A stretch of 64,000 nucleotides of DNA from Selaginella moellendorffii (taxonomy: Eukaryota > Plantae > Lycopodiophyta): the NCBI RefSeq assembly GCF_000143415.4, contig NW_003314267.1:420908-484907 (forward strand), in the 5' to 3' direction. The position numbers and the translations under genes are program-made. The notes below the pieces were generated by a model. That model saw only the letters and a program-made list of their open reading frames with translations. It was not told the origin of the DNA and did not search any database. Positions 11,438 through 60,269 of this stretch are shown piece after piece; within the stretch, counting starts at the first letter, position 1; the number at the start of each line of letters is the position of its first letter.

Positions 11438-12754
11438 TCACAAACCCAAGGGACCGGCATTTGCTGTCAGCCGAGTTACCATTGACGCGGATCTCGTCGC
11501 AAAGTATTGTCCACCGCTGTAGTGTGGCGAGGCGTCTCCACCTCCAGACTCTACAAAGTAGGCCCCGTTTACAAACAGGTCTCCAGAAGACTGCCATAGC
11601 CAGTTTGATCCACCCTTCGCTTCTCGTTTCGTCACCTGGAATGAGAGAGAGAGAAATGTAAGAACTTCGTTTTAGAGTTGTGTGAAACTTTGAATACCTG
11701 TTTGGCGCCAGTAGCAAGGAATCTGTTGGCTTCACTGAAGAACGTTGGATTGGCACTGCCACCGATTGCGTACATGTCCCAGTTTTCATAGTTGTTGTTC
11801 ACGACATGGAAGTAGCCAAATCGCCCCCTGGAGAAAACAAAGCTCTTGTTAAGTATTCCGGAAGAAACGAAGTAAAAACAACAAAACCTTGGCATACGCT
11901 GCACACATCCCACGAAGTGATTGTAGACAACGGTTATTTTCATGTTTCTGTCCGCCGAGTAGCTATCGGAGTGACCGAGGAGCATTACCTGCAAAGATAC
12001 GATCCGGTCAGCTCCTAGGAAAATTTATAAAAACAAGAAAAACAAAAAAAAAAAACACTACCTTGTCATGGTCAGAGAAATAGTTGTTTGAGATAGTGAT
12101 TGCTGTGGATCCGTGAATAGCGTCGATCAATCCATCCTGCGCCCTCGATAGCGAGCAGTGATCAATCCAAACGTTGCTGGAGCCGAAGATAGCAATGGCA
12201 TCTCCATCTGACCCTCCTCGAAAGCCTGTGTGATCGACTGACGAAATAACTCTTCCGGACGAGCTCGGCTTGCAGTCGCGCAAGGTGAGGCCGTGGATGA
12301 TAACGTGGTCGACGTACTGGAGAGTTAGGCACGGCCCGTTTAGTCCTATTTGCACGTTAGCACCTCGTGCATCGATCGTCTTGTAGCTGGTGATCAGCAG
12401 CTCGGCCTTGAGCCTGATGTTCATGTCTCTCGAGAATGTGATCCAGAGCGGGCCAGACCGAGTCACTCCGTATCTGAGAGTACCAGGCCAAGGTTGCACG
12501 GGATCATCACCAGGATCAGTGACTTGATAGACTTTACCACCCCGGCCCCCAGCAGCACCGGCTCCAAATCCCACAGCACAGTCGGCCAAGTGCATACGAT
12601 CGCCCCTCCAATCACCCCCCACCCAGCAGTCATCGATCGTGTTCCCGGTGAAGCTTGAAGCAAACGAGACGTACTTTGGTTTGTAATAATTGTAAGAACT
12701 CCTGCAAAAGAAAGCAAAAACCGTGAGTGATTGATATGTGCTTACTAGGAACTC

Positions 12755-12785
<31 letters not shown>

Positions 12786-12965
12786 CTTCTCCTTCTTCTC
12801 TGAAGCGAGCAGCTTCCGTCCAGTGCCATCCAGCGGCACAGGAATCACAATCTCCTTCTCACTGCTCGTAGCTAGCGCATCTGTTGGTTCGTTTTCAAGG
12901 GGCCAGCCAAGTCGCAGGCTCAAAAGCAAACACCATACCAGAAAGCCCCCAAGACTTCCCGGCAT
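11438..12965 (-). CDS. Pectate lyase (PL1), 5 exons
   Basis: Signal peptide MPGSLGG; [81 protein letters not shown] and NAGPL motifs. GT-AG introns of about 55-75 nt, e.g. 12702-12756. Confidence 0.94.
12757..12798 (-). repeat. Coding (AAG)n microsatellite encoding poly-Lys
   Basis: CTT run on the plus strand at the end of pectate lyase exon 1; frame is maintained across the intron. Confidence 0.85.
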
Positions 12966-13282
12966 TGCGAATGACAGTTGAGTTTCCCGCTCGTCTGAAA
13001 CCACATATCTGTTAGTCGCTTTTATACAAACGGGATCCAAGCTCGCTGTAGCGCTGGGAGCACGTCTAGCACGACTCCATGTTCACCTTGCACGACTTCA
13101 TGTTCTCGCATGTGTTTTGTTGCTTTAACTTGTTTCCAGGGATATAGAACGGCACCAGCACGTCTTCCACAATCAGTTCGATCGTGGCAGTTTTCACCAA
13201 GCCAATTGGTCAATACTGCGAGGACTCTAGAGAACATAAGAGGAAAACTTTGGGTTTGAGTATAAAGCAACTAAAAACCAGT

Positions 13283-13302
13283 ATAGGATACTGATAGGAT
13301 AC
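13283..13302 (-). promoter_or_regulatory. Tandem U12-type 5' splice-site motif (USSE-like U11 snRNP-binding element) in the 3' UTR of U11-48K
   Basis: Sense strand reads TGA gctgccga GTATCCTAT ca GTATCCTAT: two RTATCCT motifs with an 11-nt period. Confidence 0.65.
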
Positions 13303-13310
13303 TCGGCAGC

Positions 13311-15195
13311 TCATCTTCTTCGGTGCTTTGACGACTCCCTTCTGTCCCTGCTAGAATGGGAATCACTCCGGTCAGCGTCACTTTCCCACTTGTTACTTCG
13401 GTCTTTGCTCGTATACCTCTCACTTGATCTCGCGCGATCCCTGGAATGTTTCCCCGTATCCCTCGAGTAGTTTTTCTTATCCCTGTAATCATATTTGCTC
13501 CTGTTCTTCTCGTGCGTCTGTGCGTGGTCTGCCCCACCATCTCTGGTTGACTCTGGCTTGCGAGAGGATTGGCCTTTGAAAGAGCCAATTCCCCCGGCTA
13601 CAACGATTTGCTCCATGTGGCTTTCAATGATATCCCGCAAGACCTTCACGTTCGAGATCATGAGAGAAAAAACTGAAGGCGAAATTAAAGTGTCGGATAC
13701 GCACCTGAGATGCTGATCTTCGCACTTTCTTGCCTTTATAGGACATACGCCTTCGCTTATAATCTCTCTCGTCCGCTAGAAGCTCCTCCTTCGTCTTTGA
13801 CTTTGAGGAATCCTGGAGGATCTCAAAAAGTTATACAGGAAAAAAAAAAAAAGGACTCAGCAAACAATGATATACCTCGGCCTGTGAACGCTGCCAACCG
13901 AGACCATCGTGCTCCAAAAGTGGTCTATATTCTGATCGCTGCGGACGCTCTTCAGCAGCCTTGCTCACCAGAACGTCGTAGTCATCTAAGCTGCAAAGAC
14001 GAAGTAGCTCATTACGATTACCAAGTACAAGTATATCAGCTACTCACCATCTCGCATTCGTCAAGGTGCTCATATACACCCGAGCTCTCAAATAACATTC
14101 CAGAGCTGTCCGTTCTTGCAAAGCCTCGACGACGGGTTCGACGTCACAGCGTGCTAGCTGTCTACCATCCTCATCGTTATGCTGCTGTTCGGAACTAGAA
14201 AGCTTGTCAAGAGCCGAGTGCCGAGCAGACAATATTAGGAGATTCTGTAGCAGTCCCAGGATAAAGGCCCCAGCAGCTGGTCGTTGATACAAACAAAACA
14301 GTTGAGATATCAGCCAATTCCCAGACTCAAGCAGCACAGGACAGTTGAGTTGACTCACTTTGTGTCTCGAGATCCGGTCACCATTCCACGTACCAAGCGC
14401 TTCTCTTTTGATGGACGCCAAGAACAGCGTCACCAGTCCAGAAAGATGATGAGCCAGGACGGGATCCAACACTACTCCATGCCGAACGGAGTTTAGAAGT
14501 AGCCAGCCTGCGATCCTCTCCTTGTCAATCTTCATTCCTAAGATCGATATCAAAACGTTCCACGAGTAACTCCGAGGGAGAGATGTCCAGCTCTTCACCT
14601 CCTCTTGCAAAAGCCAGCACTGAGAAGGCAAAAGAGTATCCAACTGTTCTAGCGTCGGTAGCTTCTGTCGATCATCCTCAAGCTCTAGTTTGATACAGTC
14701 GGGCAAATCTGGAAAACCAGCCTGCTGTTGATGGGAGAGAGGTTGATCGGCCGAGACGGGACCAGGAGCATCCCTGTACCAAAACTTTGTCCCAGAAGGA
14801 TCAAAGAAAATCTTCTCTTTGGTCTCTTCCTGCGTTACTCCCGGTGGCTCTGGCTGCTGTTCCAACGGCACTTCCTTGCGTAAGTACCTGAGAGACGCGA
14901 CGAGACTAGCAGCCTCTTCGTCCAATCCAAGCGGCGAAGCAGGACACCGGAGCGAGTGCTGGAGAAGCGCCCTGGCGGGCATGGTGTGGCGGTAATCGAA
15001 AGGACACTGAAGAAGCACCGAGCCCGGACTGGAGGATCTGGAACCGGCTAGATCCACAGCGCCTTGGATGTCTTTCAGGATAGCTTCCGCCCGGGAGCAA
15101 AATCCGCTAATCGATTCCTTGTCATGATCTTCAGGCGTGTGAAGCGGTGGAGCTGGAATGGAGAATTCCATCCCCTGTGGAACCTGGCCCTGCAT
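13311..15195 (-). CDS. SNRNP48: U11/U12 snRNP 48 kDa protein
   Basis: CHHC zinc finger CPFDYRHTMPARALLQHSLRC. Downstream exons give YRPLLEHDGL, KTKEELLADERDYKRRRMSYKGKK, VLRDII..HMEQI and an RS/RD-rich tail. The start could alternatively be 15171. Confidence 0.88.
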
Positions 15196-15634
15196 TACCT
15201 GTTCTGGCGCGCCATTCCTGCTCTCGCCAAGAACCCTAGAACGCTTAAGCCCTAGGCGGGAGTTTACTGATGAATTATGGAACGGAATCCGTGGCGTTTC
15301 TTACATCAACGGCCTGGATTCATTCCATTTGAACTTCCTTCCAGTAGTGCGCCTAGGGTTTTTAGCTCCAGTGGACAGCAGCGTCTTCTCCGGCGACAAT
15401 CCCGCGGAGCTGCGGGCCGCCTGTGGTGAGTGATTGCTCAGCAGATTTGTCTCCTGGATCTCGCGAAATCGGCAAAGATCCAGGGATTTCTTCGCAATGC
15501 TGGCTCTAGATCTCGAGAGCGCCAATCCGGAAGCTAGCAGCGCCTCAAGAACGCAGCGATTGAAGCTGGGGAGCGTGAAATTCTGCTGCGCGGCATAGAT
15601 TCTGGAGAGATCTCTCAGCGGCGAGAAGGAAAGA

Positions 15635-42668: not shown

Positions 42669-42740
42669 TATCAGAGGGAGGTTTCGATCCTCCGACCTGT
42701 GGGTTATGGGCCCACCACGCTTCCGCTGCGCCACTCTGAT
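42669..42740 (-). tRNA. tRNA-iMet: Initiator tRNA-Met (CAT)
   Basis: ATCAGAGTGGCGCAGCGGAAGCGTGGTGGGCCCATAACCCACAGGTCGGAGGATCGAAACCTCCCTCTGATA: A1-U72 pair, three G-C pairs in the anticodon stem, ATCGAAA T-loop. Upstream TATA-like and CAA motifs; downstream T6 run. Confidence 0.97.
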
Positions 42741-59341: not shown

Positions 59342-60269
59342 TTACTCATCCTCGGGATCTTCTTCGGCATCCTCAAACCTTGAGTCCTGGACTTCTAACT
59401 GTGAAGCGAAGGAACCATGTTAGACAAGAAAGTCACGGAAATAGATGAAAAATTTTACCCCTTCCATTCCACGCTCCAGATTTTCGCTTGCCATCACTTC
59501 TTCAGCATTGAAGAACCACTCGCCCTCGCCTTCTCGTTCTATGAAACAGAAAACATCGAGTCAGAAACTAAAACAACGAGCATATCACGAAGGGAAAACT
59601 ATACCTCCTTGAGGATCGGGATTCAAGGCAGCACACTCGCAGAGGACCTGGAATATGTTATCCACTACAGTTCGTCGTCAAGGATAACCAGTCTGGTCAC
59701 CATTCATCTACGAGCAACTGGGAGAAAAAAGGATACACACTGCTGGATCCTGTGGCACAAGCCGCATTTCTCGTATTTTGGACAGATTTGCGTCGCCATT
59801 GGCAACTTCATCCTCTTCTTCGTCTTCATCGTCTTCGCAGTACTCGTCGTCACCGTTTTCGATCTAAACTCACGCGGTAATTCATTCGACTCCAAGGAGG
59901 CAAAGTCCCTGAAAACATACCTGGCAGTACACGCAAGGCGAAGGATAAGCTTCCAGGTCCCTGGAGATGGCGTGCATAGACAAGGAAAGAAAATCCACAG
60001 CATAGCCTTTGCTAATGTCGCGATCACTCAGCCACACGAGCCTCCTGTTGGAATCAAATATTTCAAAAGAATTTCAAAAGAGAATGAGGGATCACGAAGA
60101 TTTACCTCGTCGTGATGTAGAGAGTCCCGGATTCTTGAGCATCCGAGTCGCCAAGCACGATTCCCACGAACGGCTGCAGCATCGCGAAGCTCTCGCCCTC
60201 GGCCTCGTCCAGAATCGGCGCGCCATCGCCGCCGCGGTCCGGCACAGCGACGAGACCACCGCTCTTCAT
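59342..60269 (-). CDS. ICln: pICln (methylosome subunit / chloride conductance regulatory protein), 6 exons; not shown in the ORF track
   Basis: Spliced translation: GTLYITTRRLVWLSD..KGYAVDFLSLSMHAISRDLEAYPSPCVYCQI, acidic tract, EMRLVPQDP, LDNIFQVLCECAALNPDP, EWFF, RFEDAEE. Confidence 0.93.
59665..59736 (-). other. U12-type (minor spliceosome) GT-AG intron in pICln
   Basis: 5' splice site GTATCCTTTT; branch motif TCCTTGAC with the A about 13 nt from the 3' AG; no polypyrimidine tract at the 3' end; removal restores the reading frame. Confidence 0.9.

Follow-up and report, generated by a model that had tools for sequence, protein, structure and literature searches.

The U11-48K gene of Selaginella moellendorffii carries two tandem U12-type 5' splice-site cores immediately past its stop codon, and this observation was confirmed. 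A matching tandem was found at the U11-48K 3' end of all the other land plants that could be compared, and an alternative acceptor a short distance upstream of the Selaginella tandem is used in RNA. These data make it probable that the element is the plant equivalent of the USSE, in which U11-bound decoy sites promote the 13351/13348 acceptor and thereby lower U11-48K output.

The U11-48K coding region lies on the minus strand at 13311..15195 of the window, which here means the whole 64-kb stretch of DNA that was analysed. Joining four minus-strand exons (15195-14048, 13990-13876, 13812-13705, and 13643-13311) gave a 567-residue protein, and the three constitutive introns between them were confirmed by all four RNA runs. 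The CHHC finger was recognized by Pfam zf-U11-48K with 30.2 bits against a cut-off of 21.1. The 382 residues encoded by the first exon share 99% identity with SELMODRAFT_423671 of Selaginella moellendorffii, and the full 567-residue SELMODRAFT_423671 matches the spliced model. An exhaustive protein search returned 216 relatives. The named relatives that were looked up are all from plants or streptophyte algae, and many are annotated as U11/U12 48 kDa. No other protein above 50% identity to Selaginella U11-48K was returned by the word and exhaustive searches, which means that none came from a close relative such as another Selaginella species. The last constitutive intron (13644..13704, minus strand; 61 nt, GT..AAG) was spliced in 4/4 runs, and the weak AAG acceptor proposed for it by the sequence-only reading was thus verified. 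A reading of this intron from a GTATCC donor at 13700 to a CAG at 13673 keeps the frame but leaves only 28 nt; it was rejected, as all four runs use 13704-13644.

Two features elsewhere in the window were recorded separately. A textbook candidate for a U12-type intron of 72 nt is present on the minus strand at 59665-59736, with the pattern |GTATCCTTTT ... TCCTTGAC followed by 12 nt to TAG|. Its gene encodes an acidic stretch and a ...CECAALNPDP motif reminiscent of pICln. The sole Rfam match at gathering score in the window is a tRNA gene at 42669-42740, minus strand.

The tandem GTATCCTAT-CA-GTATCCTAT occupies 13302-13283 on the minus strand and starts 8 nt past the U11-48K TGA (13311..13313; the model equals the annotated P0001). 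The minus strand around the stop reads cga aga aga TGA gctgccga GTATCCTAT ca GTATCCTAT actgg. Copy 1 (13294..13302) aligns with copy 1 of the orthologues, and copy 2 (13283..13291) starts 11 nt after the start of copy 1. The element is therefore placed in the 3'UTR of a gene with a zf-U11-48K domain, i.e., a gene for a protein of the U11/U12 di-snRNP. Within the 64-kb window, GTATCCTAT occurs only at these two sites, with 0.19 occurrences expected by chance. The tandem pattern RTATCCT-N4-RTATCCT was found once in the window and never in 100 dinucleotide-preserving shuffles. Single RTATCCT cores were not enriched (19 observed versus 13 expected). This indicates that the signal resides in the tandem and its position. 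The RTATCCT core is intact in both copies, and both carry A at +8. Between the two Selaginella haplotypes, no differences were found in the alternative intron or the element, against 8 substitutions and one indel in the stretch past the element (13265-12780). No base differences within the element were seen in any of the four RNA runs.

U11-48K orthologue loci, genomic or mRNA, were scanned on both strands, and land-plant loci with enough 3' sequence were compared. The taxa sampled were a second lycophyte, two mosses, a liverwort, a fern-clade mRNA, and three angiosperms. All eight of these loci or mRNAs contained exactly one sense-strand tandem of the form GTATCCT-N5-GTATCC(T/A), and no tandem was found on the antisense strands of the same eight loci. 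The tandem lies past the stop codon in seven of them: in Diphasiastrum (GTATCCTTCTCTGTATCCT, +107; L006), Sphagnum (GTATCCTTGTCTGTATCCT, +149; L005), Physcomitrium (GTATCCTTGTCCGTATCCT, +578 in the genome, L002, and +465 in the mRNA, L003/L004), the fern-clade mRNA from the clade containing Adiantum and Ceratopteris (GTATCCTTGTCAGTATCCT, +193; L008-L011), Magnolia (GTATCCTCCTTTGTATCCT, +177; L013), Capsella (GTATCCTCTTTTGTATCCT, +145; L015), and Wolffia (GTATCCTTCTCTGTATCCA, +194; L016). The eighth, Riccia (GTATCCTTGTCTGTATCCT; L007), has it within the annotated CDS end, 306 nt before that end. The gymnosperm contig L012 has just 84 nt of 3'UTR and was left out of the count. The Chara U11-48K gene showed no tandem within 6 kb.

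The alignment contained 14 invariant columns, none of them outside the tandem. They comprise the two GTATCC cores, position +7 of copy 1 (a T), and a single spacer T. The period is 11 nt in Selaginella and 12 nt in every other plant sampled, and the A at +8 of both Selaginella copies, which the sequence-only reading had pointed out, is replaced by T or C in the orthologues. By sequence comparison, this small survey places the putative tandem decoy sites at the U11-48K 3' end back to the land-plant ancestor. The expectation that the tandem would be conserved in orthologues was thus confirmed.

Further observations were made in two of the sampled genes. The fern-clade 3'UTR contains additional single GTATCCTTG copies at +305 and +384, so that four U12-like 5' splice sites, the tandem included, are found in 200 nt. 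In Diphasiastrum complanatum, five isoforms of 579-891 residues are annotated from the single U11-48K gene, two of which have terminal tails resembling retained introns. Extensive alternative splicing of U11-48K is thus suggested for a lycophyte other than Selaginella.

Transcription and splicing across the element were assessed with Logan contigs of four runs (X1, X3, X6, and X10) from four different studies, mapped on 12500-15400. The contigs probably represent RNA, judging from their spliced structure and from the small size of the individual assemblies (about 25-56 Mb). Contig depths were not used for isoform quantities, and only presence or absence was scored. The element is crossed by contigs 13087-13349 (X1 and X3) and 13150-13641 (X6). 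These contigs read through the tandem, which shows that transcripts extend past the element and do not end before 13302.

An alternative intron was identified in the last coding exon at 13348..13416, minus strand. The joints 13350>13417 (66 nt removed) and 13347>13417 (69 nt removed), both GT..AG on the minus strand, were found in X1, X3, and X10. The donor is a weak GAG|GTATAC at 13416, and the acceptor is a NAGNAG pair, ...gattcccattcTAG|CAG|, so that the intron ends at 13351 (66 nt) or 13348 (69 nt). The event is alternative, since X6 has one unspliced contig there (13150-13641). After splicing, the exon restarts 48 or 45 nt upstream of USSE copy 1, and the segment between acceptor and USSE (13303..13350, minus strand) consists of the final 12-13 codons, the stop codon, and 8 nt of UTR. 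Both lengths are multiples of 3, and the frame was checked by hand; the reading frame is kept and 22 or 23 residues of the low-complexity Arg/Ser/Asp-rich tail are lost. The element begins 8 nt past the stop, so the acceptor and the entire alternative intron are coding and in frame. Being in frame and upstream of the stop, the splice makes no premature stop.

The sequence-only reading had expected alternative isoforms near the element and had proposed pyrimidine-tract AGs downstream, at about 13215-13250, as acceptors. No junction was present there in the RNA contigs, which likewise gave no sign of a distal acceptor whose use would splice the element out. An alternative acceptor does exist; however, it is located upstream, at 13351/13348 in the coding exon. 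With the acceptor 45-48 nt upstream, as the USSE model demands, and with the conservation described above, the proposed equivalence to the animal USSE is largely supported.

A second splicing event was found past the element. A 92-nt GT..AG intron at 12995..13086, minus strand, is joined as 12994>13087 in X1, X3, and X10 and is absent in X6. It begins 224 nt past the U11-48K stop, and its splicing connects to the 5' region of pectate lyase, the neighbouring gene. The intron belongs either to 48K, as a 3'UTR intron of read-through RNAs, or to the neighbour, as a 5' intron. In the first case, the usual plant rule predicts that the RNA would be targeted by NMD. In X6, the 48K contig ends at 13150 beside adapter sequence. 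The 66/69-nt splice and the 92-nt intron were thus both seen in three runs and neither in one, a pattern drawn from four runs of unphased contigs.

Candidate acceptors were also located in the orthologues. A pyrimidine-tract AG lies upstream of the tandem by 45 nt in Diphasiastrum, 42 in Riccia, 40 in Capsella, 39 in Wolffia, 38 in Magnolia, and 32 in Sphagnum. At this candidate acceptor, Magnolia, Capsella, and Wolffia share an aligned TGCAG|TA. Capsella and Wolffia have a good U2-type donor shortly past the stop, and from these sequences the regulated intron there would be a 3'UTR intron. In Physcomitrium, a good acceptor candidate is missing 25-50 nt upstream of the tandem, so the geometry is not universal in the sample; its mRNAs splice a 3'UTR intron with an acceptor 192 nt upstream of the element. 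Chance alone would give about 1.6 AGs per 26-nt window, and for this reason only the RNA-verified Selaginella acceptor carries weight. Niemela 2015 reportedly places the activated acceptor 25-50 nt upstream of the USSE.

The proposed mechanism is as follows. When the U11/U12 di-snRNP is abundant, the last exon would offer U11 snRNA two decoy U12-type 5' splice sites for base pairing, neither of them serving as a donor. The bound snRNP, via exon-definition contacts, would strengthen the weak U2-type NAGNAG acceptor 45-48 nt upstream, and this acceptor would be joined to the weak 13416 donor with removal of 66 or 69 nt. U11 would then stay on the spliced mRNA and, by analogy with animal RNPC3, may hold it in the nucleus and/or lead to poly(A)-site bypass. 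The spliced 92-nt intron, from 224 nt past the stop, would be present in read-through RNAs as an NMD feature. We infer that U11 binds, that use of the acceptor depends on it, and that feedback results. With the reading frame kept, the down-regulating step cannot be a premature stop from the 66/69-nt splice. The A at +8 in both Selaginella copies, which represents the loss of one U11 base pair, and the 11-nt period count against this mechanism.

A more specific version is tentative, and we think it rather unlikely to hold in full. According to this version, the Selaginella ORF has been extended through what is a 3'UTR intron elsewhere, so that the element governs a U11-dependent switch of in-frame isoforms combined with an RNPC3-style feedback. 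The protein tail would then be made with or without 22-23 basic-tail residues, and the 66/69-nt splice would provide no NMD substrate. Output would be lowered because U11 keeps the mRNA in the nucleus and the poly(A) site is bypassed, and the spliced 92-nt 3'UTR intron would be added on read-through into pectate lyase. If true, a 48K gene would be regulated in a manner so far described only for animal 65K.

The main rival to the USSE mechanism accepts the tandem as a U11-binding element and regards the 66/69-nt intron as an ordinary exitron independent of it, with the element acting after splicing on export, 3'-end formation, or stability. We consider it unlikely. It draws on a second event in the same gene: an 82-nt exitron at 14277..14358, minus strand, was spliced out in all four RNA runs. 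This exitron sits in the most conserved coding block of U11-48K, CPVL..G.WL.SQL, and its unspliced productive form was found as a separate contig in X6. The spliced isoform is unproductive because the frame shift leads to an early stop, and the 82-nt exitron looks like a second, USSE-independent unproductive splicing route in U11-48K. A single near-match, TTATCCT, was noted 12 nt past its acceptor (14264-14258) and is probably due to chance. Since this exitron is spliced without a USSE nearby, the 66/69-nt event could be USSE-independent as well, and an alternative acceptor would land within a given 26-nt stretch of an exon of about 500 nt with a probability of about 5%. The in-frame splice has no obvious feedback output, and U11 on the animal USSE can retain mRNA in the nucleus (PMC5473595), both of which suit the rival. 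However, that retention itself needed splicing upstream of the USSE (PMC5473595), and the Selaginella acceptor distance of 45-48 nt matches the plausible AG sites at 32-45 nt in the six orthologues.

The tandem could also be a functionless 11-nt duplication that arose by chance. The two units are adjacent and 10/11 identical, as expected from slippage, and in its A at +8 and its 11-nt period the tandem deviates from those of other plants. Against this stands the presence of the same tandem, at the same gene end and on the same strand, in 8/8 other land-plant loci, while such a tandem is expected by chance only about 1e-4 times per 10 kb. The conservation nearly refutes this reading, and we hold it to be very improbable.

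Even less credit is given to the possibility that a minor intron in the 3'UTR uses the motifs as true U12-type donors, although the GTATCCT core fits the U12 5' splice-site consensus. No joint from either motif (13302 or 13291) was found in the four runs, whose contigs, which drop rare isoforms, read through both. No U12 branch-site match with up to one mismatch was detected on the minus strand in 11856-14059, so the motifs are without a U12 partner site. The sites in described USSEs are likewise not used as donors (PMC5473595).

The least credible explanation, a promoter or 5'-leader signal of the pectate lyase gene, has in its favour that the annotated pectate lyase model begins close by, and it is countered by orthologous elements that stay with U11-48K despite different neighbours, or none within 3 kb, and by X6 pectate lyase contigs that cover the gene from near 12987 without an upstream exon. 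That annotated model (L001 5085-6762) starts at an ATG at the 13111 equivalent, about 200 nt past the U11-48K stop, and takes the 92-nt intron as its own first intron. Its signal peptide, however, is encoded only from a Met near 12966 onwards. The annotated pectate lyase N-terminus is probably 5'UTR or a U11-48K read-through product.

The element is not new in kind, as a U11-48K USSE of plants was already published in 2010. The sequence-only reading had offered a plant USSE as a discovery, and a passage in PMC3584512, citing Verbeeren 2010, already describes the USSE feedback on U11-48K and U11/U12-65K as conserved between plants and animals. Similarly, a passage in PMC4379411 lists Verbeeren 2010 among plant cases conserved throughout the plant kingdom. 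The present analysis adds a lycophyte member with transcript evidence for the acceptor, and a survey with a constant 12-nt period outside Selaginella. It also adds a local variant with an 11-nt period, A at +8, the stop within the USSE-defined exon, and an in-frame splice. This variant poses a modest mechanistic question and does not represent a new kind of mechanism. The compact Selaginella copy, with introns of 60-90 nt and the stop in the USSE-defined exon, would suit a small reporter addressing how bound U11 snRNP represses an mRNA when the promoted splice is in frame.

In the animal system, the tandem sites of the USSE bind U11 and are not used as donors, and an upstream U2-type 3' splice site is activated by exon definition (PMC5473595). 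U11 on the animal USSE leads to nuclear retention of the mRNA, for which splicing of the intron upstream of the USSE was needed, and the retained isoform is linked with transcripts that bypass the poly(A) site and run on into the next gene (PMC5473595). The distance from the acceptor to the USSE is under selection (PMC8329584).

The closest known system is the plant U11-48K USSE itself. The gene and strand are the same, tandem U12-type 5' splice sites with GTATCC cores are present at the 3' end, and a pyrimidine-tract AG lies about 30-50 nt upstream, in Selaginella also. Selaginella differs in its period of 11 instead of 12 nt, in the A at +8 of both copies, and in the position of the element 8 nt past the stop, compared with 107-578 nt. 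Its alternative intron is coding and in frame, whereas the plant pattern is a 3'UTR intron. The 3'UTR USSE of animal RNPC3 (U11/U12-65K) resembles the Selaginella element in that the latter is retained in the mature mRNA past the stop and an upstream U2-type acceptor is used alternatively. The RNAs of three Selaginella runs that splice towards the next gene recall the RNPC3-AMY2B read-through. However, the Selaginella gene is 48K and not 65K. The poison-exon USSE of animal SNRNP48 belongs to the orthologous gene and shares the tandem decoy U12 5' splice sites and the upstream 3' splice site; in contrast, the Selaginella element lies in the terminal exon, and its splice is in frame and makes no NMD substrate by itself. 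With plant exitrons, the 66/69-nt and 82-nt events share the property of being introns within annotated coding exons. Exitrons need no downstream U11-binding element, whereas Selaginella has a conserved one 45-48 nt past the acceptor.
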